From positions 15,893 through 52,133 of the forward strand of contig RHPI01001043.1 in assembly GCA_009103225.1 (NCBI GenBank): 36,241 nt of DNA, in the 5' to 3' direction. Shown here in pieces: positions 3,101 through 36,241 of this stretch. The notes below the pieces were generated by a model. The model saw only the letters and a list, made by a program, of their open reading frames with translations, did no database searches and was not told where the DNA came from. The position numbers and the translations under genes are program-made. Every line of letters starts with the position of its first letter. Position 1 is the first letter of the stretch. This DNA comes from Chlorokybus atmophyticus (lineage: Eukaryota; Plantae; Mesostigma and Chlorokybus algae).

Positions 3101-3881
3101 CTAGCTTGTCCCTCTCAATTGCAATGGAATGCTTGTGCACACTGACATGTGTGTCTCTGTTCTCGCTTTTGACGCCTGAATTAGAGCGAACGAGGAACTT
3201 AAAAGGTGGGCAACTGTAGTACGTCAGTCATTGCTTTGCTTCTTTAAGTAGAGTCTTGCCTGAGATTGGGGTCGCTTTGGATGGCTTGTTGCTTGTGTGC
3301 GCTTGAGAGGTGACGCTTGTGCACGCTGACATGTGTCTCTCTCTTCTGGTTGTGACATTTGCTTCAGGGCAAAGGAGGCATATGAAAGGTGAGCTATTGT
3401 AGTACGCCGGTCATTGCGCTGCTTCTTGAAGTAGAGTCTTGCTTGAGATTGGATCTTTGAACGGCTTGTTGCATTTGTGCGCTTGGGTGATACTGTGTTT
3501 ATGTCTTTCATGGTTGGCAGAGCGCAAGAAGAGGAGAACAAGGAGAACAGCAAGGAGTTGCAAGGAAATGTTAACAAGTTGACCAAGACGGTGACTGAGT
3601 TGCAAGACAACTTGAAGAAACAGAGAGAAGAGATGGACAAGTTGAGCAAAAAGGTATGTTGCTGCAGAGAGCATTCAAGTCTTAATAGCACATGACGTGG
3701 CAGCTTGTTCGACAACATTATGCAACACAAGCTAAGCAATCCCACCCCTTTCTCTCCCCGGCAGGGATTCATTGGAAGATGTGCGGATGTCGCTGATGAG
3801 TTCTTTTCGAATGTCGTGAAGTATGTACCAACGGCTCCGCGAGATGTCTTCAAAACGGTGTTAAAGTACTTTTTCACATGA
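188..3881 (+). CDS. Guanylate-binding protein (GBP/atlastin, GB1/RHD3-type) large GTPase, multi-exon; 5' end may extend upstream; one apparent frameshift
   Basis: Hand-spliced GT-AG exons: 188-252, 453-750, 929-1084, 1226-1433, 1563-~1790, 1870-~1972, 2074-2225, 2373-2504, 2613-2726, 2810-2914, 2996-3072, 3185-3205, 3368-3388, 3521-3653, 3765-3881. Motifs: G1 VAGEKRTGKS (hGBP1 GLYRTGKS), G2 region SHSTTPQTSGINLW, G3 VLDTEG, then LALLLPSTLLYNVMG and G4 LFRDW. A helical region and a C-terminal coiled coil follow. One base is missing at ~993-996, and the phase is unresolved at ~1720-1770. Confidence 0.8.
3073..3520 (+). repeat. Tandem duplication (~183-nt period) of an intron plus 21-nt microexon unit inside the GBP gene
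   Basis: Repeated blocks such as tgtagtacg..gtcattgc..gcttct..aagtagagtcttgc.tgagattgg and gcttgtgcac.ctgacatgtgt. Microexons are ag|agcgaacgaggaacttaaaag|gt (3185-3205) and ag|ggcaaaggaggcatatgaaag|gt (3368-3388). Confidence 0.8.
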
Positions 3882-4292
3882 CATGGACAGAAAGTTGTAT
3901 AGTTTAGAATCACTCACAACACGAGAGGTAGGCGTGCATCTTGTTTGTAGGCAAGGATGTTGAGTGTACCAGGGTGGGCAGACACTCTGATGGTGTGTGT
4001 ATTGTATTATGCTGAAGCACTGGGTCACATTCATGTCTGTGTGTCTTGTGGTGCTTGCATTGCACCCTGTTTGCCAAAGCAAACATAGCCAACGAAGTGC
4101 CATGACTACATGTAACATGATAATATGAACCTCACAGCGCACAAGTTCAACAACCAACAGGGCAGCAGAAGTTATAGTAATCTAGCATTGGGTCACATGT
4201 GTGTTAACGCGGGTGTTGTGGGCGCACAAATCCGCACTCCTTCTGTTATACACACATACACCCACAACAACACGTTGCCTGTCCTTTGCGCG

Positions 4293-4296
<4 letters not shown>

Positions 4297-4344
<48 letters not shown>
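4297..4344. repeat. (CT)n microsatellite running into an assembly gap
   Basis: Direct reading of ctctct... up to the first N. Confidence 0.95.
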
Positions 4345-4783
4345 NNNNNNNNNNNNNNNNNNNNNNNNNNNNNNNNNNNNNNNNNNNNNNNNNNNNNNNN
4401 NNNNNNNNNNNNNNNNNNNNNNNNNNNNNNNNNNNNNNNNNNNNNNNNNNNNNNNNNNNNNNNNNNNNNNNNNNNNNNNNNNNNNNNNNNNNNNNNNNNN
4501 NNNNNNNNNNNNNNNNNNNNNNNNNNNNNNNNNNNNNNNNNNNNNNNNNNNNNNNNNNNNNNNNNNNNNNNNNNNNNNNNNNNNNNNNNNNNNNNNNNNN
4601 NNNNNNNNNNNNNNNNNNNNNNNNNNNNNNNNNNNNNNNNNNNNNNNNNNNNNNNNNNNNNNNNNNNNNNNNNNNNNNNNNNNNNNNNNNNNNNNNNNNN
4701 NNNNNNNNNNNNNNNNNNNNNNNNNNNNNNNNNNNNNNNNNNNNNNNNNNNNNNNNNNNNNNNNNNNNNNNNNNNNNNNNNNN
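4345..4783. other. Assembly gap (N run)
   Basis: Continuous n characters. Confidence 0.99.
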
Positions 4784-7084
4784 GCGGGGGGGCAGAGGGC
4801 AGCAAACAGACAAGCAGTTGCTATTGGACACAATGCTACTCGTCAATACACATGCTGCAACCCGCTTTAGCTCATCCCATCAAGGCAAGATATTGGTGGT
4901 GGTGGTGAGCAGTGCATGGCTCATCATACACAGCTGATTAAGCTTCAAACAGAAAGCTCCATTTGCCACAAACACAACTATGACAGCCGGGTACTTGCTG
5001 TTGTTGGTATGGTTTGTGATGTTGTCTTCATTGTTGCACGTTTAGGCTACCACTAGTCAAGTGGTGACTTTCCTCAAGTCATGAGAGTTTGCATGTATGC
5101 ACTTGTACTGAACTGCCGCAGCGTCTTGTGTGATTGCAGTGTCGCCATGTTTTGACAAGCTGTGAGTTACTCACACAAGCGGGATGCATGCGCTTTGTGT
5201 TTGATATGTGTCTCATGCGACACATGGCAATACAGGGGTGTGCACGTGCATGTGCACGCCTGTGTAATATCATGTCTGCATGTGTGCGGGCGCGTGTGTG
5301 CCTTTGGGCAAGAAGGAGGGGTGGGGTGGGAGGGGGAGGGGATGACTCATTGCGGCTTTGAGCTGCAACAACAATAACACCAACAGCAACGACAATGACA
5401 ACGACAACAATAACAACGTGGTTACTAGCAACACCAGCTTGTCCTAGAAAAATTTCTTTGCAACTTGCACTGCTTTGGCAACCGGTCGCGCACGAGTTGT
5501 GGACAACACAAACAACTTTCGCGTATGAGGACACAATCTGTTTGGAGAAGAGAGAACGGAAAGACGGGAACATAACGATGCGAGGAGAAGTTCCAACTTC
5601 CTCTCTCTTCAAGCTCCATGACAGAGAGCGAGCAAGTGAGCATGTGAACCAGTGTTCTTTTGCGCGAGCTGTATCACGTCATTGCAAATGCATACACAGC
5701 TTGCCTCAGTCTCATTTACACGCAGGATTGTTTGATGTACTATTCCTGCCTGGTGAGTTGTCATCGTAGTCATTGTCGACGAACATTGCAGCTGTGAGCA
5801 CGCGGCATGGGACACTATGACATGATACTGCACTTGGTACGCTTGTGCGTGGTTTCGGGGTACGCAAACCAGCAGCTGCGCAACATGTCACAGCTTAAGT
5901 ATGCGTGCTGGTATGGGTCAACAACTTCAACAACATTGCTAGTAGTATTTGAAAATGCCAGTAGTGCCTAAACTATCTCTTTGGCGAGGGGTATGAACGC
6001 CCGTGTGCCCATGGCTTTAAAGTATGCTGCGTCCGCCTGCATGCCGAACTCCATGTCAAAGGTGATGAAGGGCGGGGCCCCCAAACGTATTAATGCACTT
6101 GAACCGCCAACAACTGCGAGTATTGCAAGGGGAAAGCTCTGAGTGCCACATGGTGCGTGTTACATTACAAGCGTATACGTGTGCGTATGCGCATGTGTGC
6201 ATCTGTGCCTGTGCGTGTGCGTGTATGTGTGCGCGCACAAGCACGATACTCACTTGTGGGCCGTCTGCAGAGATGAGCCCGGCAGCTAGCGAATACGACA
6301 TGAAAGTGTTCCCGTCACCGGGGCCGAGGGCGTGAGTCCCATGGTTCATCGTAACACGCTCTCGGCTCGGCATACTGACCCGCAACGCCTCATAATCATT
6401 CACGTACATGATCATCCTGAGGATTCAAGAATATCGGTCCGAGGTGAATCTCTTTGTCATACCATCAACGTGCACACGGACAGCACGTCCTACCACTGTG
6501 TGTGTGCGTGTGCGTGTGCGCACGTTCGCATGTTTGCGTGCGCGTGCGCGTACCTGCATGCAAGCAGGCACACCCATGCACACGAGCACACACGCACTTA
6601 CCCACACATGCAAGCACATGCTTGTGACACACATGCCCAAACATGCAGCAGTCACAACGCAGGCAAGTCTCCGCTGGGTTTCTACAACAAGGCCAAACTG
6701 TGCGCGGACCAGACAAATGTTGCCCGCACGCACCCGACCACAACCTACTTCCAAAAGACATTCGCACTTGCAGGCGCACACTGCGCGCACACTTACGGGG
6801 CCGACAGCTTGCCTGAGGGCCATGTCGAGTCACCAAACGAGGAGTAAGTCCACATTGAGCCCGGCTGCCCGTCATCCTTATAACTCCACGCGCTATAAGT
6901 TTTGAACTCACTCAGCCATTACTGCACATGATTGCATATGAGCCTCTACACACATAAAAACACATCATGATTATATGCACCGCAATGCATACTTTGTATA
7001 CATACCCACATGACCACATACCCTCATTACCTTTGTATGCAGCGTGTCGGGTTCGAGCACGGCAAAGCCACAGTTGCAGTGAGT

Positions 7085-8025: not shown

Positions 8026-10515
8026 TCAAGCAGGGCTGGGCACCACATTATGGGTGTTGGGCTTCATCTCCAGGTGGACGGCAGGCATCTCCACACCATC
8101 CTCGCCGACAACTTTGCCTTGGTCATTCACTGTCATTGGCAGCGCGGGCTGGTCGTCACCAAGATCAAGCTTGGATGATCGCGCCTCCATCCGTTTGATG
8201 TACGCATCAACGCGCTTGCCAACTGTGCAAGAAAGAGTCAGAATAAAGCGCTTACCAGTAAGCAAGGGCCATGACCTGCGAAAACTTGCTTACTTGGCCA
8301 TTCCGACATGCGGAACTTCCAGAAGTTGATTCTGAAGGTGACAAATTTGCAGCAGAAGTAAGACGCAAGGCCCATGATGGCGCCGTAGGCGATGTTGTTG
8401 GTGAAGGGCATGGTGATGATGGTGAGGAAGGCCGGGATGGCCTCAGTCAGATCCATCCAATTGATTTCAATAACAGATTCCAGGAAGATGACAACCCCAA
8501 TCAGCATCAAGATGGGTCCCGTTGCTATGTCAGGAATTGGCCCAGCAAAGATGGGGGAGAAGAACACGCACAAGAAGAACAGGAGGGCGCAGACGAGAGC
8601 GGTGATCCCAGTGCGACCACCGTCTCGCACAGCAGCTGCAGACTCTACGTATGTGGTGATGGAAGAGGTGCCCAGGACGCCTCCCAGGGTGGTGCCGAGA
8701 CCGTCCGAGAGGAAGGCCCAGTTGCAGCGTGGGATCTCGCCTGTTTATTGATGTGTATCAGATATATGTTATTTTCTGGTAATGATATTGTGTTCAGTTG
8801 TACGCATTGATGCATGCAGTCACTCGCCTGTCTTCTTGTCGAGGATGCCCATCAGCTGACCCATGGAGTAGAAGGTGATGCAGCTGCCGATGAAGTCCAG
8901 GTACAGGAAGGTGATGAAGGCTGCATTCATGCACAAAGAAGAATGAGCGTCAGCGGACACGACAGCAGCAAAGCCTCACAAAAGCACACAGCACAGCATT
9001 GCCCCACCCTCCACGAGTGTCTTCGTGTTGTCGCCCCAGTGGAAGTCGAGGTTGCCAGCAGTCTCGTGGAACTTGGGTGTGCGAACAACGCTGTCGGGGG
9101 CAGTGGTATGCCAGCGGATCCACGTGATGAAGGTGGTGAAGAGGATACCAATGAGCATGGCTGCATTCACTCGGTAGAGCATGAGGAGGCCCGTAAGAAA
9201 GAGACCTGCCATAGCTAGCCAGGGACAGCGCGGGGCCCCGTTGGCATCCAGCGCGCAGATGTTGAAGTCCGGGTTGAGCTTTGTCAATGTGGGAGGCGAG
9301 TTCTGAATGATGAAACCGTTCTGCTTCACTCCCACCCACGCAATGAACACACCGATACCTGTAACGAGTCAGGAAGAAGTTCAAGGCTAGCTGGCACGTG
9401 CACATTCACCATTTATGCATGTGTAGCCATAAATATAAGCGTACCACAAGCGCCTGCCATGAGGACGGTCGTCGGGAAGAGCTTGAGCAGGACAGAACGC
9501 ATGCCAACACAAGCTATGGCAGTGAAGACAAGGCCCTCAAGGAAGACAGCCGCCAAAGCCTGCCATGGTCTATCAGTAAGAGTCTCTCACTGCGTGGTTT
9601 AACAGCGGGGGTCGTGTTCAACAGTTCACACCTGGGGATAGGGGGTCTCGTAGCAGGTCTGAGTGGGGTCGTCAGCGCAAGGGTGGGGCTTGACGACGTT
9701 GTAGACAAAATATACCTGTGGATTGATACCTGTCAGTGCGCAAGTACAACAAGTCGAAGTTGGTATACATATGTTGCAAAGCGTACGTTGGTGCCAAGCT
9801 GAACGGAGCACACCCTGCATGCGCAAACAGAGGAAAATCTGCGTTAGCGCACTGAGCTGCAAGATGGTAGCTTGCATTTGGGTTGCTGCTTACCATGGGT
9901 AGTTGCCAGCAATTGCCATGATGAGTGTTGCAAACCTGCACGCACACATGCTATCAGCCCCTGAATTGACAACGAAAGACCTTGGCACAGGGGATAAACA
10001 TCTTGCAAGCAGAGAAGCAATGGCCACGGCTACGAACCCTGTGGAGATGGCTGTCGCGAGCAAGATGTCATCCTGCCGGACACATACAACCAGTTCCCAA
10101 AGTCAGCATGCTTGTCTCTGCATTGGTTGACAAAGTGTCACATCCGGTCGCATTGCTTACCTTAGGCATGCCGGCGGCAGAGAGGATGAGAGGGTTGAGG
10201 AAAAGAATGTAAGCGCTCGTCATAAACAGCGTGAACCCCGCCCTGAGCAGCAGAGAGAAGCAGTGCCAGAATCAGTGAAAACACCACACCACATGCACAG
10301 AGGCAAGACAATGCTGTAGGGCAAACGCCTGCACAATGCTGGGCGTCCAAGAGTCAGTGCAGTTGTGCATGCGACGAGGCAAGGGGAGCAACCACAGCGA
10401 GTGCACCGCATGCATTGCACCTGAGCTCGGTGAGCCATGAGGACTTGCGCCGTCTGATCTGGAAGAAGTCGTTCAGCTTCTTCTCCGGCCCGGCCAGAAA
10501 CGCCGGCAACTTCAT
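8026..10515 (-). CDS. AzgA/AZG-family (NCS2) adenine/guanine/hypoxanthine-type nucleobase permease, multi-exon
   Basis: Spliced translation: MKLPAFLAGPEKKLNDFFQIRRRKSSWLTELR|AGFTLFMTSAYILFLNPLIL..ATAISTG|FATLIMAIAGNYPW..QALAAVFLEGLVF..GIGVFIAWVG..SDGLGTTLGGVLGTSSITTYVESAAAVRDGGRTGITA..ATGPILMLIG..AIPAFLTIITMPFTNNIAYG. The ESAA..GGRTG and PAFLTI..MPFT..IAYG motifs are typical of AzgA/PbuG. Exon 1 is 10515-10421, exon 2 is 10242-10161 and the stop is at 8026-8028. Confidence 0.92.
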
Positions 10516-12477: not shown

Positions 12478-15400
12478 TCATGCAGCAACCGCGCCAGTGG
12501 TAGCCGCGTGCAGCGCATCCTGCACAGCGGTGGATGTGGCCACCCAGCCGCCGATTGCTCCCTGCGACTTGACCATGGAGACCGCAGCAGCTTTGAATCT
12601 GCAACGCATATTCACAAAATTCAGTTGCAACAAGCGAGTGGTCTATGCGGTCAAGCTATTGACAATCTCACTCTGGGAAGTAGGACTCCGTGCAGTCTTC
12701 CAGCAGCAAGCACTGGTAGCCACGGTCGTTTGCTTCACGCAGCGTCGTCTGCACGCAAACTTCGGAAGTGACTCCACCAATGAGCAGGTGTGTGATGCCA
12801 TGGATCCTGCCAGCAGCCGCAGCGTACACAAGTGAGCAACAGATCGCAACGACTCAAGGTGTTCTCCCTGACACAGGTGAGTAGCTAAACGTGGCGCATA
12901 TGTACTGTATTGCCTGAGGATACTGCTTACTTGAGATAGTCCGCAAGCTCCGTGTTGTAGAATGAGCCTTTGCCCGGTTTCCACAGTTTCTGCATGAATA
13001 CAACCACTACCAGTGAACGCATGTAAAGGTATGAAACAACAAGCAAGGAGAGGTAGTAGGAAACCGTGTACGCACACTTGTCATACGCTCAGGTTGTAAG
13101 AGTGGCATACCCAACAAAGTGTTGCACAAAAAGCATAATAGAGGTAACAGCAGAACGCACCTTCTCTGCAGGCAGAGCATCGCACTCATCCACGAGGTTG
13201 TTGCCATACTCATGTCGAATGAGGATTCTTCCCATGTCACCCTGCGGAGAGGTGATAAGGCACGGCCACAACAAGACGGACGGAGACAGAGCCCCAACAC
13301 AACAGCACTCACCGCGTCGCCAATGCGCTTGCCCACTGGCGGGTTGCCGCGCGTGATCTTGGTCGAGTGAAGGTCAGAGCAGTCGGGATAGTGGGCTTCC
13401 AGGGTATGTATCACATGGACGCCATGCTCACGGGCGGCATTCTGTATGCCAAACATGCACACTGTAAGCGACTCAACCTGCTACGCATGAGTCAGCAAAC
13501 TACGCGACGTAACAACTGGGTTATCGCTCACCAGCATTGAGCTGACAGCAGGTATGATAGCTTGCAGAAGCTCCACTTTGTTCCCAAGAGCGGCACCGAA
13601 ACCCCCATGAAGGACAAAGTCCTTCTGCATGTCAATCATAAGCACTGCTGTGCTTGCCACCTACTCGGAAAGCCACCACATAATGGTCAAACATGAGCAC
13701 CAGACAGCGACAAGCATCAGAGTGCCAGGGTTGCCTGCTTACCGGGAACATGAAGTCATAAGGCTCTGCTTTAACCACAACTTGCAGGTTTGCCTTGTCA
13801 TCTGGCAGCGGCCGCGCAACAGGGAAGAGAGGTGCTGTGAGAGCCTCAATCAGTGCCGTTGAGTCCGCAATCGCGCCAAATACTCCACCCTGCGTCATCA
13901 CAACAGTCACCCTCAAACCAGCGAGCCTTTCTTCAAAAAGTGGAGTGACGAAGCCGTTCTACCTGCTTAGTAACCATATTGCATGCAGCTTCATGGTTTG
14001 CAGCGTCTGTTGCAGCGGAGCAATCTGTAAGCAGCAGGCACTCATAGCCTCTATCATTCGCGTCTCGCATGGTTGTGTGCACGCACACGTCGGTTGTGAG
14101 CCCGCACAGCACAATGTTCCTGATACGGCTGCAGAAGGAGAGAGCAAGTGGGTGAGCTTTAGCAGGGGATTCTTGGACTGTGGTACTCACTTTCGTCTCA
14201 GCAACATGTCAAGGTCTGTTGCATAGAACGAGCCCTTGCCCGGCTTCTCAATGATGTCTTCACCATCGAGGGGTGCCAGCTCAGGGATGATCTCCCAACC
14301 CTGTCGGTCATGGGATTGTAGCAGAAGGAGCAAGAGCCCGCACACTCCAACATCGCATAGGAAAAGGAACGATAACATCACACCAAGCATGCCTGTAAAA
14401 GCGACAGGTATCCATCGAACTAGATTTTGGATATGGGATAGCTGCCATCTTGGGCACCCACCTTTTCCCCGCGGGTGAGTATGCGGCCGTCGCTGCTGTC
14501 ATCGCCTATGCCAGCACCTAATTCACGAGACCTCCACAGCTGCGCAAGACAGAATAAAACTTTGTGGTTCTCCAAGCTGTAATGCAACTTCCAGTACTCA
14601 CTTTGTTTTTTGGCAAGTCTGAGAGCGTGTTGGGTCTGTGCCCTTCGCGGGTGTGCATGACATGGAAACCATAGCGGCGGAAGACTTCGAGGACCCGCTT
14701 GATCTTTGGGATTGTCGCCCGCGCATTGGTCAGGTCGTAACCCATGCGGTCCACATACCCACCCTCCCCACAAAAGTCTACTTGCATGTCGATGATGAGC
14801 AGCGTCTAAAGGCAGGCACAATCCAACAGTCAGCAAATGACTACAACGAGACATTGCGCATGTCAACAAAGCAGACGCAGCTGTCTCACTGTGTTGTCTG
14901 GGCGTATGTGTCCATCGTAAGGCCAGAGGTATGGCTTTGAGTCCACGCGCCTTGGCACAACCTTTGCTGGCAGCTCGAAGCCGCCGAGTGCATCCGGCGC
15001 GGCCTTTGCCGTGTAGTTGCGCCACCCGCGATAGGCTGTTATGTCCCGCATATTCTATGTGGGACATTGCATTGCCACAGTTACTGAGATGCATATACAG
15101 ATGAGCCTGACAGCTAGGCCATGCTGCTGGCAGACCTGAATGATGTAAGGCTCTCCGAGCACGCCGAAGCATGTGCTGCCGTCGTCCATCTTCATCAATC
15201 CGACCATAAGGCCTCTGGGCTCATCCGCCATAATCATGGCCAAGCCTTGAGGCGTCACATCAAACAACTGCGCAAGGAAAGAGACCGTACGCACAAGCCA
15301 TCTGCACTGTACCCAACTGCTGATGCTCACACAAGACGCTGTGTGCAAGTTGTGCTAACCACCAGACGTTACCTCAACTTCGATGGAGGCTCCGTCTTTG

Positions 15401-16074
15401 CTCTGCATCAAAGCTGGGTACTTGCCTTCAACCGCGTAGATGCGGTAACAGGGAGCAGTCCTGCATTCTCTGCGGTACCAAACAATCGTCAAGTACGGCA
15501 TTGAGCCCAGACGTTCAGTGCTGAACCACCCACATCTCCTCCCGTATGTGCAGGTACTTGCAGGGACTGTTAATTACTACCACTAGCTGCATTGTGTGCG
15601 GCATGGTTGGAGCAGGTCTGTGTAGAAGCATAGCGTGCGGTGTGTGTTGGTTTGTTGGCTGTGCTCATTGTGCTGCTGCATGTGTGCGGGATGGTGCGGT
15701 CTGTGCTGGCACTGCCTGCGGGAGTGACACGTGTGCTTGCATACGCATTGTGCTTTATTAGCAAGTTCTATCCATCAACATCCATCCCTCTGCTCATCAC
15801 GCTAAAGCAGCACCCAGGCAGCTGCCGAGGTAACCATGCAGAGATCCAGTATTGCACGCATGAGCCAAGCTCAAGTCAAGCAATTTCACATTCACAAGCA
15901 CGATGACCAGACCGACTGCACAAAGCGAGCTGCTCACTTGACGAATTTCGCCCCCGCATTCACCATGCGGAAGTTTTGGTCGAGCCCCTGCATGAGCTGC
16001 CCGGAGACAGCCAGCTGCCAGCTGCCAGCCGGCGACGGAGCCATCCCTTTGGCACTCGCCCCGTCCGTTACCAT
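12478..16074 (-). CDS. Gene A: tri-domain fusion of allophanate-hydrolase-C-like domain + biuret hydrolase (BiuH)-like + triuret hydrolase (TrtA)-like; both isochorismatase-family triads intact; 15 exons
   Basis: Domain 1: [32 protein letters not shown]|[22 protein letters not shown]. Domain 2: [15 protein letters not shown]|[39 protein letters not shown]|[60 protein letters not shown]|GGVFG. Domain 3: EPYDFMFP|[62 protein letters not shown]|[18 protein letters not shown]. All introns are GT-AG. ATG 16074-16072, stop 12480-12478. Confidence 0.9.
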
Positions 16075-16631
16075 AGCGGAGCTCTCCCAGCCTCCCAAAC
16101 CACCACCACCACCACCTCCTCCTCCTCCTCCACCTCCGCCCAAAGCGTTGTGAGCAAAGCTGCAATATATACGTTGGCATTCGGAGCCGAGAAGTTGCCG
16201 GCCGCACCCGGTCGCATCACGGCGAGCTTCATCGGTCGCGCGCTTGCCGCCGCGGGTTCAATTCTGCTTTCCGACCGGCTTGGCTTGCTAGCTTATGAAA
16301 AGCCAAATGAGTGAGAGTCGGACGTTGTCATGGTGATTGGAGGTGGAGGCGGCGGCGGCGGCAGCGGAGGAGGAGGGTGACGGGGCAGTGGAGGAGGAGG
16401 TTGGGACAGGGAGGTGCTGCGGACAACGCCGCGTATCGCCGCCAAAGTCCGGGTTCGTGCGGCGTGGCGTTGCTTCGCCTTGCATTGCTTTACTTGCGTT
16501 GCGTTGCGTTGCGTCTTGCCTGCATTGGGCTCGTGCTCTGCATGCAAGCAAGTTGGGTTGTCTCTGTCGCTGGTTGTGTGTGTATGGCCGACTCGCTCAC
16601 CGGCTTGCATTGCATTCCTGTACAGAGCGGC
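16075..16631. promoter_or_regulatory. Probable shared bidirectional promoter/5'UTR region between genes A and B
   Basis: Divergent ATGs lie 557 nt apart. The region is GC-rich, with GGA/GGT/GGC-rich tracts on each sense strand (16092-16140 minus, 16339-16400 plus). A probable 5'UTR intron of gene B ends at cctgtacag|agcggcATG (16625). Confidence 0.5.
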
Positions 16632-20711
<4,080 letters not shown>

Positions 20712-23772: not shown

Positions 23773-25315
23773 ATGGCGTCAGCGGCGGCGGCGGCGGCGG
23801 CGGCGGTGTGCTTGGTGCTGGCCGTGATTGCCAGCCACACGGTTGCGGTGGCGGCGACCAACTACGACGTGGGATACCCTGATGCTGGCGGCTCACGCAC
23901 AGACGATCTCTGGGACTTCCCCGTCACGCTCAGCAACAGGGTGGGTGATTCGAGGTGAAAGGGGATGGAGAGATGTTTGTTGCTCAATTGATAGGATGAT
24001 CAGGTCACAGAAATACCCGATCAGCATTCGCATGGTTGGTCTGATGAGTTTTGGAAAATCCGTTACCACTGCAACTAGTAGGATATGTTGAAAGAAGAGT
24101 GTCAACGATCCCCATGATCCTGTTGGTCACAGCGTCGTAACATTTGTCATGGTGTTTGTCGCCGCCTACCACTTGATCAACACAGCACAGCGTCTGTGTG
24201 TGGTTTCTGTCACGCCTACTGACACACTCACCCTCCTTGTTCATCTTGCAGCCCGGCTCAAACTTCACGTCCTATCAACAATGGGCCAACCAAAGGCTGA
24301 CGCGGGCGAAGGGTGGCGACACCCTGACCTTCCGCTTCGCCACAAACCAATACACCGTCTTTCGTGTCGCGGATAATCTCAACTACGCCGACTGCAACTC
24401 CACCGGGACCGTGGTATGCACGCACGCACACAGACATGCATACACACGCACATGTACACACACACGCCATCCAGAGCACATAGTTGTTGCTGAGTGGACA
24501 CGCTGTTGGAACTCAGGTGGGCACGGTGTCGCCGGTGGTGTTGACGCTGACCGACTCCACGACGTACTACATCATAAGCAGCATCTCAAAGGCGCAATGC
24601 ACCCAGGGCATGAAGTTCACCTTCACCACCACAAGTGAGCAGCACACACACGTTGCGCGCATGGATTAGTGCACAACGCGCACATGCACAGACATGTGCA
24701 CTTGCAGACATGCGCGTTCGCGCAGTCACACACATGCATACGCATGTGCATGTGGCAAACACGCATATGTGCAGTCATGTGTACACACGCACACACGCCG
24801 ACACAACCTCGTGTGCAGGCTCCCCTCCCCCTCCTCCACCCACACCTCCTCCTCCCCCATCTCCCCCGGCCTCACTCACTCCCGCCCCCGCTCCATCTCC
24901 ATCCGGATCCGGCCAGACTCCCGGCCTGGCCCCCGCTCCCTCCCCCACCACATCAGGAGGCACACCCACACCCGCCCCCGCCCCCGCCCCAGGCAGCGTG
25001 TCACCCAGCAACGCTCCTCCCCCACCCACTTCAACCACACCCGCACCCGGTCCGAGCACGGCGGGAGGGACAACACCACCTTCGGGATCACCTACAACAT
25101 CACCCACAAAATCACCCACATCTGCACCGGGCCCGTCACCCAGCACTTCTCCCACATCATCATCGCCGCCTCCACGCCTTTCACCTCCCCCTGCGGGCAC
25201 CACTGGTGGCACGCCTGCGCCAGCTCCTGCCAAAAACAGTGCGTTGGCGTTGTCCACCACACGCGTCGTTGCGTTGGGATGCGCAGTCGCCGCGATGTTG
25301 GCCATGGCGGTGTAG
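23773..25315 (+). CDS. Phytocyanin/early-nodulin-like chimeric arabinogalactan protein: signal peptide, plastocyanin-like domain, Pro/Ser/Thr/Ala-rich region, GPI-type tail; 4 exons
   Basis: MASAAAAAAAVCLVLAVIASHTVAVAATNYDVG..W..|..YQQWA..GDTLTFRF..YTVFRV..NYADCN..|..LTLTDSTTYYIISSISKAQCTQGMKFTFT..|SPPPPP..APAPS..PAPAKNSALALSTTRVVALGCAVAAMLAMAV*. The Y.VG..W, GD.L.F, Y..C and C..GMK motifs match phytocyanins. Confidence 0.85.
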
Positions 25316-26454
25316 GAACCCCCACATTGGGGTGTTCCGTCGAGTTGATTCAAGCTGGAGAGCTCTCCACCGTGTGTATCATTGTTGCGGTGTTGAACTG
25401 GCTCTGGTGTCGTGTACCGTGCATCTGTAACAACTGTTGGTTGTTGATGTCGGCTGCTGATCTCTGCCATGCTTACTGTTGCGAGTTGTGCACAGTTCAT
25501 CCATATTGCTACTGCGATGCAAGCTCAGAAATGCTTAGGCGGGTTTCAATGCTTGCATATGCGCTTGTGTGTGCGGGGTTATCGGAAGCTCTCCTCACCT
25601 GCAGGCATGCCACGAGATTACCATGCAAGCATGCATGCACACGCGCACACACACATAGCCAACCCACGCATACATGCGTGCACAGACGCGCGTAAGCGTG
25701 CAGGCACACATGTGGACACACATGCGCGCACACACAATTTCAGACGCACACCCACGCACACCCACCCACCCACGCGGCTTACCTCCAATCCACAGTGCTG
25801 CGACGCCTCGCTGTGGTACAGCGCTGACCATCTGTCTTGCATCTGGCCTTGAGCGTGATGCCCTGCCAGGGCGGCTTGCACGTGATGGAGGGGAAAACGC
25901 CAACCCACGCCCACCTGCACGGACTGAGTGAATTGAGAAGCTGGAAACCACTTGCTCACAGAACGCGCAAGGGGACGGACGCCTCCGACACCGGTGGGTG
26001 CACGTTGACCTTGTGTGATGTGATGTGGTTGTGTAGCCAGTGAAAGAGAGAGACACTGCTTGTTCGGCACATGTACACATGCGCTGGTGTAGCGTCAGAC
26101 GTTTCGACATGTGTCCATTTTGTTGAAGCTGCGCATGCGCCAAACGTTGATGCTCAGATCACCAACTAGGTCGTGAACACAAACAGCAACGCCTCTGCCG
26201 TCATAACGGGCTACGACGCTGCCACACGCTCAAGCTGTAGCGTCGCCTGTCGCAGTCTCCTGTGACATGCACGTGGGGGCATGATCTTGTGTCACAGGAC
26301 AGGACAAGGCCTACATGTACGTGCCTGTCCCAATTCTGTACCAGCAATGTTGCTCTTTCATGCCCGGCTACCTTCCTATGAGAGAGTCCAATTGAGTAAG
26401 TTTACAAACTTGCACCTGTTAGTATGAGGCTCATACTTGACAGGCCTCCGTAAG

Positions 26455-26941: not shown

Positions 26942-29900
26942 GGGTAAGTATGCCTAACTTGGGGCTGTTTGGAGATTATAAGGTTATGCCTTCCGCGGTG
27001 TTGGTTTTTTGGCGGCCATGTATATGTATGATGTGTAGATAAAGTTTTTGCCTACACAGCCATATTTTTAAGGGTTTTTTTGGCCTAGTATAACGTTAGT
27101 TGCAGTAGGCCAAAGTTGGGGTGTGAGAGCTAACAGTCCCAAAAGTCGCGGGCCCTAACTTGGGGACTCGATGCAGCCTGCCAAAGGCTGTCAGCAGACT
27201 GCAGCCTGTGCTGAAGGCTGTCTAAGGCAACCTTGCAGCCATTTCGGCATGGCTGCGGCCAGTGGGAGCAGGCTGGGGGGGCAGGCGGACACGCAGGTGA
27301 TAGCCTTGACATGCAGGTTACTTGGGCTGCAGGCAATGCTTGCCGCCAAGCGACGAGCATTGCCTTCATTGCAAGGTTGCAAGCAAGGCGGCGAGGTGGG
27401 CGGCATGCACAAGGTAGGCAGCATGCATGGGGGACAGGGGTGCATGTGTGTGTATGGTTGTATGTGCAGGGTCAGAGCATTGCTAGCTACCACTAGTGCT
27501 AGGTGTAGCTACTGCTGGGGTGGTCTTGCGCTTCTGGCGCCAGCGTGCGCCAGCCTCCTTGGCGAGGTGGTTGGTGCGGCCGTTGAAGTGACGCTCAGCG
27601 ACATCCCACAGGGGATCGCCCAGTTGGTTATGGCATAGCATAGGGTTCCACTAATAGCGGAACCAGATCTCAAGGGCTTCTCTGGCTGTCTGCTCTCTCA
27701 CATGCCTCTGCTGCCGTGCATCTTGTGCTGTTGCCTGTGCCTCTGCTCTCTCCTCCTTCTCTAGTTCTTGCTGCCGCTTGGCTGCTGCCTGCGCCTCTGC
27801 CTTCTCTTGCCGCTTCTTCTCTTTCTCTTGTTCTTGCTGCTGCTTGGCTGCTACTGCTGCCTCTTGTGCCTCTGCTTTTTCTTGTTGCTTCTTCTCCTTC
27901 TCCCGCTGTGCTATCATCTTCTTCAGCTGTGCTCTCCTCTTCTTCTCTGCTTGTGCTGCTGCCTTGGCTACTGTATCCTCAACTGCTTGGACCTTTTTCA
28001 GTGCTGCAGCTTCTTTATGAGCCTTGGTTGCTGCCACCTTGGCAGCCTTGGCCTCAGCCTTCCTCTGCAGCTCATCGATCACCTCATCAGCAATCAACAG
28101 GTGAGCAATCTTGATGCTCTTGGCCCTCTTTGCTGGCTGCCCATCTGTGCAATCTTCTTCGCCATTGTCTTCCTCTACTGCCTGCTCATCTCTAACCTCG
28201 ATTGCCTCCAGCAGGGCAGATAGTTCAGGTGCCGGTGGGGCTGCTTCAACAGTGTGGAAGTACTTGTCGCAGCAGTGCTTGTCAAGGGGCCACAACCCAC
28301 AGGCTCTGAACCCTGAGATGATGTTCTGGGGGGACAACGCAATCAGATAAGGGTTTACCAGCACCTTCAAGAAATCCTTGCGCTTGAGTGCCTGGTTGTG
28401 GTGTCCGTCCTCCCTCTTACGGTACTCCTTCTTGTAGGCTTCTTTAAATGGGTGGAAACAGCTAACATCCAACACTTGTAGCCTATGTGTGGTGTGTGGT
28501 GGTAGTATGAGGATGTGGAGTCCCCGGTCGAGTGCAAAGCGGATCATCTTTGGGTTGTACCTTGAAACATGCCCGTCCGTGACTAACAGCGCAGGGTTCT
28601 CAGGGCTGACTCCTCCTGGCAGCCATGACACCAGCTTCTCAATCCAGAGCTCGAAGATGTAAGTAGTCATCCACGCGTTGGCTTGAGCAAGTAGCGGGCC
28701 CCGGGGACCTTGAAGGCCTTGACATCAGCGCTGACTCTCTCTCTTCATAATCACAAGGGGTGGTGCGGCAAGCCCAGCTCCAGTTATTGCGCACATCAAG
28801 GTGATGTGCTCTGCTGCCGCTGGTTGAACACTGTGCATACTTGTTGCCACTGCACAGGCAGACAAGTGAGTCAGCATGTGCATGAACATGTGCATGCACA
28901 TCAATCTCAAAGACAATGCATGAATCTCAAAGACAACACTAACAACTCTTACCGTTCGCAGATGATGCGGATGTTCCCTGCAGCACTGTTAGGCTCGATG
29001 CCAACCTCGTCTGGTGACAGGATCCTCTCTGGCCCAACACCCAGCTTGTGCACAGTCTCAGCCAGCAGATCAAAGTATTGGTACACAATGTCTTTGGTGA
29101 AGGCAACCCTCCGGGACCTGTCAAGAGGCTCAGCCTTTCTACTGATAAGGTTGTGCCTCTTTCGTAGCCCATCGAACCACTTCTGCCCAGGTATGCCATT
29201 GTTGAACAGCTTTGCGCGCGGGTCTCCCACGAGCCACTTGCCTACTTCAACAAAAACCTCCCCCCAGGTAACACCTCTCCCCCATTTGTTTCGCAGCTTC
29301 ACCCACTCTGCTAAGTCCTTCTCTTCTTCATCAGTCAACACAGTCGAAGCCCCTGGTGCTCTGCATTGCATACACACTTTGCTCAGCCCCCCACCAACGC
29401 AGTGACCAACTCCTGACTGCAACACTGAATGCACTGACACGCAGGACTTGCTAACTCATTTGTACACAGGCAGGTCCTGCTGCTGGGCAACGAATCTGCG
29501 CATGGTTGAGTCAGAGATGTCCAGCTCCTTCACTGCGTCACTCACAAGCATGCAGCCTTGGTTGATCGCAGTGACAGCCCTGCTGATGTCCTCCATCCTC
29601 CCCTCGTATATGCTGTAGTTGCGCTTGCGTTTATCGGCCTTGGGAGTCTGGGCCTTCACTCTCTTGCCCTGCCAGCAGCATGTTAGCTTGGGTGGTCTCA
29701 GTGGCATATGCCACCGTGATGACAAGCATGCCAAAGCGTGCAAACTACCCACCCGGGCCCAGCTGCGTTGCATAGCAGTAGGTGTAGTTGTGTAGTTGTG
29801 GTAGTCTTGCCTTGAACTTGGGGACCTCCTTGCAATGCACAGTCCTCCTCCACACTACTGCCGTGTGCTAACTCAGTGCAAAAATTGTAGTGCTCGACGA

Positions 29901-32908: not shown

Positions 32909-34192
32909 ATGGCACCACCTGCAGTTGACTCTCAGAGTGTCATTGGCGGGGCAATTGAGAAGTATGCCCAGGAGCGCAAGGCTCTGCTTGATGCCAACCC
33001 ACAGCTTGGCAAGGAAACATGGGATGCATGGGCTCAGAAGGTTCGTGATGGCTATGAGACGGACTTTGTCACACTTCCTCGCGCAAGCAAGGAGATGGTG
33101 ATCCGCATGCTCGAGCACGAGCTGACGAACAATGTTCCGCCACTCGTGCGCGGTGATCCGAAGGTGGCTGCTCTGATGGCTGTTTACGATAAGCCTCCCC
33201 CTTACCAAGGCAAGCGAATGGCGTTTGAGGCTTTGGCCAACTTGGGAGTGGAAACCTCACAGCGTTGCAAGGACGTGTTCTGGTACTTGGGACCTAACTT
33301 GGAAGACAAGTTGACTGGCCGAGTACAGTTGACGGCACGCCTCGATGCTATGCAGGCTGAGTTGGTGGCGCTGCGCCAACAGGTGGCGGGTGCTACTTCA
33401 GCAGCTGGAGCATCAGCGGGGCTGCCGGATACAGAACTGAATAAGCCTGAGAAGTTCAAGCCCAACGGCAGCGTCAGTATCCACGACTGGGTGGTAACTG
33501 TTGAGCACTATTTAACAGCATTGAGACGCCCCGTTGGTGAACACATTGCTGTTGCTGAGTTGCTCATGCCTTCTGACGCTCTCGCCGAGTGGGCGAGGCA
33601 GACACAGGACGGTGCTACCAAAACAGTGGAGGCACTGTTTCAGTTCCTGACGGAACGCTATGGTGGCATGGACCCGGCTACTCAGGCTCGCAACAAGCTC
33701 AGCAAGTTGCGACAGAATGGTCGGGCGGCTTCAGCCTATCTGCAGGAATTTCAGGCATTGGTGGGTCGTGCCAACAGCGGCCTCATGCCTATTGACAAGG
33801 CCGAGCAGTTTGAGTTGTACAAGCGCGGCTTGGATGCGCGTGTGCGTGATCAACTGCAGTACAACACGGCAACGGGACTGCCTTGGGTTCCCGAGGACTT
33901 GGCCAAGTTGCAGAAGCTGAGCGTGTACCTATACAACGATGACACGGCGGTGCAGGACAAGTCACATGTGGCAGTTTCGGCCAAACCGCCAGGGGTGGGA
34001 GGGAAGCGTTTCCCTCATCCGAGTGCACACTTGGCAAAGAAGGCGAAGACATATGGTCCTTCTACTAGTGCCACACCTGCTGGTGGTGCTACGCCTGCTG
34101 CGGCTCGCACCTGTTACGTCTGTCATCAGCCTGGCCACATTGCAAAGAACTGCCCAACCAAGGGGAAGGGCAAGGCCAAGAAGGTTGAATAG
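32909..34192 (+). CDS. gag: Gag (retrotransposon capsid domain + CCHC zinc knuckle)
   Basis: 427-aa ORF with KPEKFKPNG..IHDWV..E.YL, ARNKLSKLRQNG..AYLQEF and FELYKRGL, ending in CYVCHQPGHIAKNC. Confidence 0.9.
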   Translation: MAPPAVDSQSVIGGAIEKYAQERKALLDANPQLGKETWDAWAQKVRDGYETDFVTLPRASKEMVIRMLEHELTNNVPPLVRGDPKVAALMAVYDKPPPYQGKRMAFEALANLGVETSQRCKDVFWYLGPNLEDKLTGRVQLTARLDAMQAELVALRQQVAGATSAAGASAGLPDTELNKPEKFKPNGSVSIHDWVVTVEHYLTALRRPVGEHIAVAELLMPSDALAEWARQTQDGATKTVEALFQFLTERYGGMDPATQARNKLSKLRQNGRAASAYLQEFQALVGRANSGLMPIDKAEQFELYKRGLDARVRDQLQYNTATGLPWVPEDLAKLQKLSVYLYNDDTAVQDKSHVAVSAKPPGVGGKRFPHPSAHLAKKAKTYGPSTSATPAGGATPAAARTCYVCHQPGHIAKNCPTKGKGKAKKVE

Positions 34193-36241
34193 GATTACGT
34201 CGTGACTGATGTAAAAGTGGTTGATGGCCAGTTGCTTGTGTTATTAGCAAACTGGTTTGATGAGCTGTCCCAAGTGCATGTAATGACACACGCATGGCAA
34301 ACACATAGCAAGTTGCCACTTTTTGACGTTGCAAAAGTGGAAGAGAATGCTTGTGTGTTGGTACATGTGGAATTTAACATGCTTACCAATGTGTTGCACA
34401 CTTTGACTGAGTTGCAAAGTAAACACAGAACTTTGAGTGTGGTAGTAATGGTGCCTAAGTATCATGGCCCATGGTTGAAACATACTCGAGGGGGAACTGT
34501 GTTAAAGCAATTTAGCAAGCGTGAAACAGGGACAGTGCGATTGTCAGCAATTTTACTCAACCCTCGCATTAGTCACGGACTCTTGGCTACATTTCAAGGA
34601 CGGGTTGTGCCTCTGTTGTGGACATTTAGTGGCACAATGCAGGGAATAACCAGTTCGTTCTTGATTGACACTGGTGCAACGCACAATTTTATTGAGGAAC
34701 AATGGGTTGTGCGCAATAAAGTAGCGTGTAAACCCTCAGCATTTTCAGCTGCCGGTGCTGGGGGTACGTTACCAGTGAAAGGAGAAATCAAAATGAAGGT
34801 AAAGATTGGTAATTATCATGCCAATCTCACCTTCATAGTGGTGTCCATCAACATAATGGGTGTTGATGTGGTACTAGGACAGGAATGGCAGGACAATGTT
34901 AAAATGACATTGGATACTGGTGCACGGTTGTGCACAGTGAAAAAGGGTCGTAAGCGTGTAACGTTGTCTGTAAAAGGGTCGCATAGCTTGGAACACAAGC
35001 AAACAGACCCTGCGCTTCTCAGTGCACTTCAGGTGAAGCGTGCGTTGCGTAAAAACACACCGGCTTTCCTTGTGCACTTAACGTCATCTGATGACTTTGT
35101 GCCAGGCAGTACGGCAGGTGTTGCAGACATCATTGAAAAGTATCAGGACATATTCTCAGATGAGTTGCCAGGCTTACCCCCTGATCGAGGTGTCGGACAC
35201 ACCATACCACTGATTCCTGATAGTGAGCCTCCATTTCGGCCAATATATAGGCTGAGCCCCAATGAGAGGGGGGAAATGGAAACTCAAATCAAAGAGTTAT
35301 TGGAAAAGGGATTGATTGAACCGAGTTCTTCACCCTTTGGCGCACCCATCTTGTTTGTGATGAAAAAGAATGGGAAATTGCGCATGTGTGTAGATTATCG
35401 TGCTCTAAACAAGATTACGGTAAAGAATCGATACCCGTTACCACGGATTGATGATGTGTTTGATAAACTGTCGGGTAATGCGTACTTCAGTACGCTAGAC
35501 TTGACAAGCGGTTACCATCAAATCCGTATTCACCCTTCTGATGTTTACAAGACAGCATTCAGAACACCTTCAGGTCATTATCAATACAAAGTGTTACCTT
35601 TTGGATTGACAAATGCACCTGCGGTGTTTCAGAAGGAAATGAATAAGATCTTTGATAACATGCTTGGCAAGCATGTTATGGTTTACTTGGATGACATCAT
35701 TGTCTTCAGTAAAACAAAAGAGGAGCACAGAAAGCATCTGGAAGCGGTGTTTGCTTTACTGCGANCATAAGCAGCACTTGGAAGCGGTGTTCGCCTTGCT
35801 GCGTGCACATCGCTTGTTTGCCAATCTTGCGAAGTGTGACTTCTGCAAGACGGAGTTGCCATTCTTGGGGCACATTGTGAGCGGTGCGGGTGTGAAACCT
35901 GACCCTCGCAAAGTGCAAGTTGTAAAGGATTGGCCTCAACCTAAGAATATCCATCAGCTGCGATCATTCTTGGGATTGGCAAACTACTTTCGCAAGTTTA
36001 TGATGGGGTACTCCACAGTAGTGGTGCCTTTGACAAAACTGTTGCGAAAAGATGCTCCATTCTTATGGACAGCTGAACAAGAAGCTGCTATGCAACAGGT
36101 GAAGCTAGCTTTGACTTCTGCTCCAGTGTTGGCATTGCCAAACTGGGACAAGCATTTCACTGTGGTTAGCGATGCGTCCACCCTTGGGTGTGGTGCAGTA
36201 CTGTTGCAAGATGGCAGACCATGTGCTTATGAGAGTAGGAA
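34193..36241 (+). CDS. pol: Pol (unknown N-terminal domain, aspartic protease, reverse transcriptase, start of RNase H), partial
   Basis: Protease FLIDTGATHNFI and DVVLGQEW. RT SSSPFGAPILFVMKKNGKLRMCVDYRALNK, YPLPRIDD, LDLTSGYHQI, PFGLTNAPAVFQ and VYLDDII. After the n at 35764: KCDF..LPFLGHIV..RSFLGLANYFRKF..APVLALP..VSDASTLGCGAVLLQ. Confidence 0.93.

Follow-up and report, generated by a model that had tools for sequence, protein, structure and literature searches.

A single gene of Chlorokybus atmophyticus, a green alga of an early-branching lineage, appears to encode the enzymes of a triuret-to-allophanate route in one polypeptide. It lies in a 36,241-nucleotide (nt) stretch of contig RHPI01001043.1 (assembly GCA_009103225.1, positions 15,893 to 52,133), which is called the window here. 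The gene occupies positions 16074-12478 of the minus strand, from the ATG at 16074-16072 to the TGA at 12480-12478. Its coding sequence of 1890 nt is divided into 15 exons, with every intron of the GT..AG type, and specifies a cytosolic-looking product of 629 amino acids (aa). Three modules follow one another in this protein, namely an AH_C module (aa ~20-140; domain 1), a BiuH-type domain (aa ~158-385; domain 2) and a TrtA-type domain (aa ~398-615; domain 3). Based on comparisons with characterized enzymes, we consider it likely that this one three-module protein takes triuret through carboxybiuret and biuret to allophanate, with the TrtA-type domain acting before the BiuH-type domain. The alga would thus probably break down nitrogen-rich urea condensates with a single enzyme.

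The boundary between domains 1 and 2 is inside exon 4, which holds the end of AH_C and the beginning of the BiuH-type domain in an open frame. Likewise, exon 9 carries the end of the BiuH-type domain, a linker and the start of the TrtA-type domain. Because both domain junctions fall inside single exons, the fusion is independent of the splicing model. The component enzymes are already known, and the association with AH_C is the most original element of the gene.

Identity of the two hydrolase domains

On every computational test, domain 2 is BiuH-type. When it was compared with all solved structures, the best match was the BiuH of Rhizobium (6AZO; 342 bits, E 1.7e-101), followed by Rhodococcus BiuH (309 bits) and TrtA (194 bits). 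The Pfam family Isochorismatase (PF00857) was found on exons 5, 7 and 8, with D183, K290 and C323 in the triad columns. Residues were compared using a signature of fourteen catalytic, substrate-binding and discriminating positions, defined after Tassoulas et al. (PMC7948467). The signature of domain 2, DFYYEKKSTDCTQV, is the same at all positions as that of a Rhizobium BiuH encoded beside atzD, and it includes the BiuH-consensus set (Tyr, Tyr, Asp173, Thr, Val218 and Ser) as well as Phe41, Lys145 and Gln215. The closest characterized enzyme is the BiuH of Rhizobium leguminosarum bv. viciae 3841 (PDB 5BK6/6AZO; EC 3.5.1.84), with which domain 2 aligns end to end. The two share the triad, the equivalents of Phe41, Lys145 and the trans-acting Gln215, all six BiuH-consensus discriminating residues and their clade. 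They differ in that the algal domain is the middle part of a eukaryotic, intron-containing, three-domain protein with a predicted activity.

Domain 3 is TrtA-type by the same kinds of comparison. Its best match among solved structures was the TrtA of Herbaspirillum (6XIX; 200 bits, E 3.3e-58), while BiuH (6AZO) scored 146 bits. The domain 3 signature, DFFNEKKSTECYQI, agrees with the TrtA consensus (PMC7948467) at F35, N41, E160, Y187 and I205. Five of the six residues that discriminate TrtA are present, and position 134 has Ser instead of Ala. This exchange (A134S) was neutral in published TrtA mutagenesis (PMC7948467), and Ser also occupies the position in bacterial TrtA-type proteins such as P0325. 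The Asp24/Lys129/Cys162 triad of TrtA is kept along with Glu72, Lys132 and the trans-acting Gln202; the algal residues are D422, K529, C562, K532 and Q602. Herbaspirillum sp. BH-1 TrtA (PDB 6XIX/6XJE) thus has in common with domain 3 its triad, F35/N41/E160/Y187/I205, Q202 and, in addition, an N-terminal AEPY.F.FP segment. It differs from domain 3 in that the latter is joined C-terminally to a BiuH-type domain, has Ser for Ala134 and has a predicted activity.

A maximum-likelihood tree of 70 domains gave the same assignments. On one side of a branch with 100/100 support were 18 bacterial TrtA-type proteins together with 14 second domains from algal fusions, domain 3 among them; all BiuH-type domains were on the other. 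The TrtA-type domains of all 14 algal fusions formed one clade (98/97). Domain 2 fell on the BiuH side of the 100/100 branch, within a group of green-algal and streptophyte sequences, and both BiuH-type domains of Chlorokybus clustered with those of other streptophyte algae.

The initial annotation of this DNA had named domain 2 as BiuH and domain 3 as TrtA from their motifs. All motifs that it quoted are present in the 629-aa protein, including KQGGVFG in domain 2 and QGAIGGW in domain 3, and both Asp/Lys/Cys triads and both trans-acting Gln residues are intact (D183/K290/C323/Q363 in domain 2 and D422/K529/C562/Q602 in domain 3). Both names are borne out computationally by the structure matches, which are reciprocally the best, the discriminating residues and the tree. 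Phylogeny, a check that it had proposed, places domains 2 and 3 in the BiuH and TrtA clades, respectively.

The AH_C module and its bacterial partners

Domain 1 is a Pfam AH_C module (PF21986), and the exon pieces that encode it are collinear with the profile at positions 2-27, 29-63, 65-106 and 109-123. PF21986 is also present in the precomputed Pfam results for P0151, the public version of this gene. A hidden Markov model of fusion-type AH_C matched P0151 with an E value of 8.9e-25, even though exon 1 is missing there. AH_C is otherwise the C domain of allophanate hydrolase (K. lactis 4ISS, G. bethesdensis 4GYR), with which domain 1 shares homology along the entire module. Fusion-type AH_C is much nearer to the stand-alone AH_C proteins of bacteria than to the C domain found in true allophanate hydrolases. 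A profile built from thirteen fusion-type AH_C domains scored 173 bits against the stand-alone, 137-aa c4763 of E. coli (5C5Z) and 59-80 bits against the latter. Further, the exons upstream of the BiuH part encode AH_C only, with no amidase-signature N domain, so the protein is not an allophanate hydrolase, and domain 1 has diverged in conserved AH_C motifs. NCBIfam allophanate hydrolase models matched only over their last ~110 positions, with 68-87 bits against cut-offs of 487-511, as measured on the AH_C of the paralogue P0001 and on the three-domain protein P0152 in place of domain 1 itself.

The initial annotation had called domain 1 a putative decarboxylase, a label that is right in part. 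Identity with the known decarboxylase, TrtB, was dropped without a direct sequence comparison, since only AH_C/GGACT-type profiles match domain 1 and TrtB has been aligned with AtzH and HpxZ, small proteins of a decarboxylating type (PMC12625717, Fig. S11). Thus, the module is AH_C and is unrelated to TrtB. The implied link to the pathway still stands, since trtA/biuH operons of bacteria include AH_C genes.

The sequence collection contains approximately 8000 stand-alone AH_C proteins, 125-140 aa in length. We took 80 species-representative bacterial loci with such a gene and typed the neighbors within 10 kb. Typed biuH and/or trtA genes were found in at least 25 of the 80 loci, and both genes in 16. 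The AH_C gene often directly follows trtA and sometimes overlaps it. In Elainella (locus L084, 9292-10372), for example, a bmp-permease-formamidase-biuH-ATPase-trtA operon is closed by an AH_C gene that shares 11 nt with trtA, and a Nitrospira contig (L062, 4771-6053) has the same layout. Independent fusions occur in bacteria as well. A single open reading frame (ORF) of Roseiarcus (L080, 9053-10387) joins a TrtA-type domain to AH_C, and the metagenomic protein P0210 unites BiuH and AH_C in one ORF, in the order opposite to that of the alga. A DNA search of E. coli genomes for the Klebsiella-type AH_C gene gave no match.

The known bacterial operons (bmp-permeases-formamidase-biuH-ABC ATPase-trtA, with or without atzF, atzD and trtB) therefore have their enzymatic parts in common with the algal gene. 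In many cyanobacteria, Verrucomicrobia and Rokubacteria and in a Nitrospira, AH_C is the last gene of the operon, which makes all three algal domains operon partners. The order is biuH...trtA-AH_C as separate genes in bacteria but AH_C-BiuH-TrtA within one protein in the alga, which, in contrast to operons with trtB, has no TrtB-type decarboxylase in this protein. Because stand-alone AH_C adjoins trtA and/or biuH this often, the alga has fused three recurrent bacterial operon partners. A 'missing trtB' has been noted for comammox bacteria (PMC12625717), and the AH_C gene of the Nitrospira contig may fill this gap.

Two further kinds of bacterial protein were noted. P0180 of Paenibacillus sp. 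598K (526 aa) consists of a BiuH-type and a TrtA-type domain. The nucleophilic Cys of the former is replaced by Gly, and the latter has His at the position of E160 and Phe at that of Y187. Many actinobacterial 'biuret amidohydrolases' of 400-480 aa (among P0211-P0264) have a full BiuH-type domain behind approximately 200 extra residues, in which the only match is a partial, degenerate isochorismatase-like one.

What AH_C does in these systems can be read in two ways. Tentatively, we propose that AH_C supplies the missing decarboxylation without TrtB, taking the N-carboxyl group off carboxybiuret and perhaps also off allophanate, and that this would hold both for the stand-alone bacterial proteins (including c4763, 5C5Z) and for domain 1 of the alga. 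It is also possible, though we would not call it probable, that within the same architecture AH_C acts after BiuH, converting or passing on allophanate or N-carboxycarbamate in concert with a separate amidase, or that it is a module for dimerization or for docking, by which allophanate hydrolase is recruited. For allophanate hydrolase, sequential steps on allophanate have been ascribed to the N and C domains (PMC5770610). An AtzF-like amidase gene lies approximately 9 kb or less from AH_C in six bacterial loci; in five of these it comes directly after AH_C, as if an allophanate hydrolase had been split. A Citrobacter trtA/biuH operon contains full-length atzF and no separate AH_C, and streptophyte algae and a bacterial contig join AH_C to BiuH alone. 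A role after BiuH sits less well with most of the fetched bacterial trtA-biuH-AH_C operons, which have no amidase within 10 kb, or with the Roseiarcus ORF, in which AH_C is fused to a TrtA-type domain alone. Moreover, in one of seven metagenomic contigs with a stand-alone AH_C gene, this gene adjoins that of cyanuric acid hydrolase, another producer of carboxybiuret.

Proposed route from triuret to allophanate

From these comparisons we infer, as follows, which substrates the fusion protein uses, what AH_C does in it, how its chains are arranged and what its physiological role is. The TrtA-type domain (Asp422/Lys529/Cys562) would remove one terminal amide from triuret by way of a thioester, giving carboxybiuret and ammonia. 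Carboxybiuret would then lose CO2 to form biuret, either spontaneously, which takes place with a half-life of approximately 20 min in vitro, or helped by the AH_C module. Biuret would be hydrolyzed by the BiuH-type domain (Asp183/Lys290/Cys323) to allophanate and ammonia, and the last step would be left to a separately encoded enzyme or to spontaneous decay of allophanate to urea. The initial annotation had put forward the same order of steps up to allophanate, with channelling of unstable intermediates as a possibility. In both BiuH and TrtA, the Gln that positions the substrate is supplied in trans by the partner subunit, and in the algal protein the loop with this Gln is true to type in each domain (QGGV in domain 2 and QGAI in domain 3). 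Hence, like would pair with like between two chains, rather than domain 2 with domain 3 within one chain. In the cell, the protein may serve to scavenge nitrogen from condensed ureides that arise from oxidized purines. A salvage role of this kind fits with the adjoining gene for an AZG-type purine permease.

Several observations weigh against the proposed route. To our knowledge, the enzymology of biuret and triuret hydrolases has so far dealt with bacterial members only. Exons 1-4 are without an RNA contig in the low-depth contig set from RNA run X1. Domain 2 matched the NCBIfam BiuH equivalog (NF050097) over profile positions 1-221 of 221 with 368.9 bits and so missed the cut-off of 370 by 1.1 bits; on the same model, Rhizobium BiuH scored 427.8 bits and TrtA-type proteins 197-250 bits. 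In domain 1, 35 of the 49 AH_C columns conserved at ≥90% are kept. As the other 14 have changed, domain 1 of this gene may be non-catalytic; NGTLMRG reads SGQLMQG and an invariant Trp is replaced by Phe. Activity on carboxybiuret would be new for AH_C, which is assigned a later step in allophanate hydrolase. Five of the seven metagenomic stand-alone AH_C genes lie less than 6 kb from genes of the oxalurate pathway (allF/allG) and not beside trtA; in four cases, allG immediately precedes AH_C. Finally, specificity in this family hinges on second-shell residues and backbone conformation (Tassoulas et al., PMC7948467), and the residue signature is for this reason suggestive but short of proof.

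The last point leads to the question of whether domain 3, domain 2 or both act physiologically on natural ureides other than triuret and biuret, such as formylurea, oxalurate-like compounds or other breakdown products of purines and pyrimidines. It is uncertain where triuret and biuret come from in nature (PMC7948467), specificity has shifted in some members of the family (GuuH and the generalist RhdBiuH), and the neighboring gene encodes a purine permease and not a ureide transporter. Nevertheless, we think this rather unlikely, given that the first-shell and discriminating residues equal those of the characterized enzymes and that placement in the BiuH and TrtA clades is strongly supported.

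Gene model, neighborhood and relatives of the fusion

Nine exon junctions, from 5/6 to 13/14, were matched to the base by contigs of RNA run X1. The gaps in these contigs have CT..AC ends, i.e., GT..AG when read on the minus strand, in all nine cases. The link between domains 2 and 3 is present in RNA as two overlapping contigs that chain exons 8-9 and exons 9-10-11. None of these low-depth contigs crosses the junction of exons 14 and 15. The 15-exon frame joining three domains, as first described, was thus found in its place, with exons and RNA junctions 5-14 in agreement. The claim that it yields a single polypeptide is upheld by the position of the domain junctions within exons, by the RNA junctions and by relatives built in the same way, of which one is encoded by an ORF without interruptions.

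Exon 5 was used as a query against 1.8 billion representative proteins (1116 phmmer matches), and a subsequent homologue search led to the public version of the gene, an unnamed protein (P0151; EukProt/JGI Chlat1 gene 1831 of Chlorokybus) that is identical to ours in all shared exons. This match identifies the window as Chlorokybus DNA. The public model is mis-spliced. It starts inside intron 1 and lacks exon 1, which in our model fits the consensus of 25 AH_C sequences, and it carries insertions of 17 and 12 aa that are read from introns 3 and 10. The RNA junction 13441/13532 contradicts the 12-aa insertion. It is very improbable that the three-domain frame is an annotation artifact made of two or three adjacent genes that are unjoined in mature mRNA: RNA contigs are indeed absent for exons 1-4 and the exon 14/15 junction, and P0151 departs from our model at three places, but both domain junctions lie in open frame within single exons, RNA contigs chain exons 5 to 14, all three domains recur in the paralogue P0001 and, in another organism, in an uninterrupted ORF of 1866 nt, and transcript-derived AH_C-BiuH proteins exist in other streptophyte algae.

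Table 1. Exons of the fusion gene and two neighboring genes in the window (positions are those of the window; RNA junctions are from run X1)
Feature	Position	Strand	Content and evidence
Exon 1	15938..16074	-	aa 1-46; start codon, N-terminal part of AH_C (..AKFV); Pfam AH_C positions 2-27
Exon 2	15373..15469	-	aa 46-78; AH_C; Pfam positions 29-63, E 2.4e-5; GT..AG sites
Exon 3	15136..15267	-	aa 79-122; AH_C; Pfam positions 65-106, E 3.9e-4
Exon 4	14890..15054	-	aa 123-177; end of AH_C (Pfam 109-123), short linker, BiuH-type start (6AZO alignment begins)
Exon 5	14602..14805	-	aa 178-245; BiuH-type; Asp183 at 14790-14788, GEGGY, MGYD, HTREGHRP; Isochorismatase Pfam E 2.6e-8; RNA 14539/14602
Exon 6	14462..14539	-	aa 246-271; BiuH-type; RNA 14539/14602, 14300/14462
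Exon 7	14191..14300	-	aa 272-308; BiuH-type; Lys290, Lys293 (EKPGKGSF); Pfam, RNA junctions, residue map
Exon 8	13963..14128	-	aa 308-363; BiuH-type; TTDVC, nucleophile Cys323 at 14085-14083, Gln363; Pfam E 6.2e-17; RNA 14128/14191, 13889/13963
Exon 9	13743..13889	-	aa 364-412; BiuH-type end (GGVFG), ~25-aa linker, TrtA-type N-terminal strands; RNA contigs
Exon 10	13532..13660	-	aa 413-455; TrtA-type; Asp422 at 13633-13631, HGGFG (Phe35 position), LGN (Asn41 position); RNA 13660/13743, 13441/13532
Exon 11	13313..13441	-	aa 456-498; TrtA-type (RGNPPVG); 6XIX alignment, RNA junctions
Exon 12	13161..13241	-	aa 499-525; TrtA-type; RNA 13241/13313, 12989/13161
Exon 13	12931..12989	-	aa 526-545; TrtA-type; Lys529, Lys532 (WKPGKGSF); RNA junctions, residue map
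Exon 14	12672..12806	-	aa 545-590; TrtA-type; GVTSEVC (Glu160 position; nucleophile Cys562 at 12757-12755), SYFP (Tyr187 position); Pfam E 1.3e-11; RNA 12806/12931
Exon 15	12478..12598	-	aa 590-629 and stop; TrtA-type Gln loop QGAIGGW (Gln602, Ile at 205 position), C-terminal tail
Paralogue P0001 (Chlat1 gene 1832)	16584..20708	+	head-to-head with the fusion gene; 644 aa, same three domains, 55% identical; tblastn
AZG-type adenine/guanine permease	8241..10271	-	downstream, same strand as the fusion gene; Pfam Xan_ur_permease E 1.5e-15; exons mapped in part

In the paralogue P0001, the BiuH-type domain is intact. Its TrtA-type domain (signature NFYNEKKATEGYQI) is probably catalytically dead, because the residue equivalent to Asp24 is Asn (CINMQKEF at 19651-19674) and that equivalent to Cys162 is Gly (TTEVGCQTT at 20373-20399, with a Cys one residue later). 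A plus-strand RNA splice of the GT..AG type runs from 16451 to 16625. Since this acceptor is inside the annotated first coding exon (start 16584), the true 5′ end and start codon of P0001 may differ from the public model. One X1 contig joins 32 bases of exon 3 of the fusion gene (15140-15171), in opposite orientation, to the first exon of P0001 (16757) and includes 99 unmatched bases; probably, the assembly formed a chimera here that spans the bidirectional promoter region. Positions 17001-18000, which fall largely in the gap (17484-18016) that separates two coding exons of P0001, have a G+C content of 0.75 and a GC skew of -0.61.

The permease gene was revealed by Pfam searches of stop-to-stop segments of the minus strand, and its product matched Arabidopsis AZG1 (8IRL) with an E value of 5.5e-33. 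Together, the permease and the two fusion genes form a small nitrogen-salvage cluster. Selected ORFs in 3224-3913 and 24694-25695 had no Pfam match. Elsewhere, the window includes an island of low G+C content (0.27) at 4001-5000, the remainder being approximately 0.5, a DDE_1 transposase-like ORF at 27651-28670 on the minus strand and a retrotransposon ORF at 32909-35770 on the plus strand with gag, zinc knuckle, aspartyl protease and reverse transcriptase.

Three-domain proteins were found for the two Chlorokybus genes and the uninterrupted ORF, which is on a JGI contig, and for no others. Two-domain proteins are more widespread. BiuH plus TrtA-type proteins of approximately 470 aa occur in chlorophytes (Chlamydomonas CHLRE_10g448500v5, Chromochloris, Botryococcus, Micractinium and Scenedesmus, among others), a pelagophyte, a chrysophyte and one Paenibacillus, and AH_C plus BiuH proteins of approximately 370 aa in Klebsormidium, Spirogloea and other streptophyte transcriptomes. 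The chlorophyte form, as in Chlamydomonas reinhardtii, and the Klebsormidium/Spirogloea form have domains orthologous to those of the Chlorokybus protein, and each is without one module. Two-domain look-alikes from dinoflagellates and some from MMETSP were excluded, as their second domain is not TrtA-type. The TrtA paper noted trtA in 'some fungi and phytoplankton' (PMC7948467). Whether the architecture had been reported was left undecided by the initial annotation. Public protein sets do hold it, but the searchable literature yielded no paper that describes an algal biuret/triuret hydrolase fusion and no report that links AH_C to the triuret/biuret pathway.

The fusion can be read as a Rosetta stone that links the widespread but functionally vague AH_C to the triuret/biuret pathway, a link that the bacterial operon data support independently. 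If the decarboxylase reading of AH_C is true, the Chlorokybus protein would catalyze three steps in a row, from triuret as far as allophanate, and the trtB-less trtA/biuH operons of bacteria, which number in the hundreds and include those of comammox Nitrospira, would be complete after all. In addition, the fused enzyme could serve as a compact tool to make crops tolerate biuret and triuret or use their nitrogen.

The algal fusion also bears on the natural origin of biuret and triuret. An intron-containing fusion of BiuH and TrtA-type domains is conserved across green algae, from Chlorokybus to Chlamydomonas, and Chlorokybus has it in two copies, next to a purine permease gene. On these grounds, we argue that such ureides are genuine metabolites of photosynthetic eukaryotes, probably derived from oxidized purines, and not just impurities of fertilizer. 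This question is now testable in a model alga for which mutant libraries exist.

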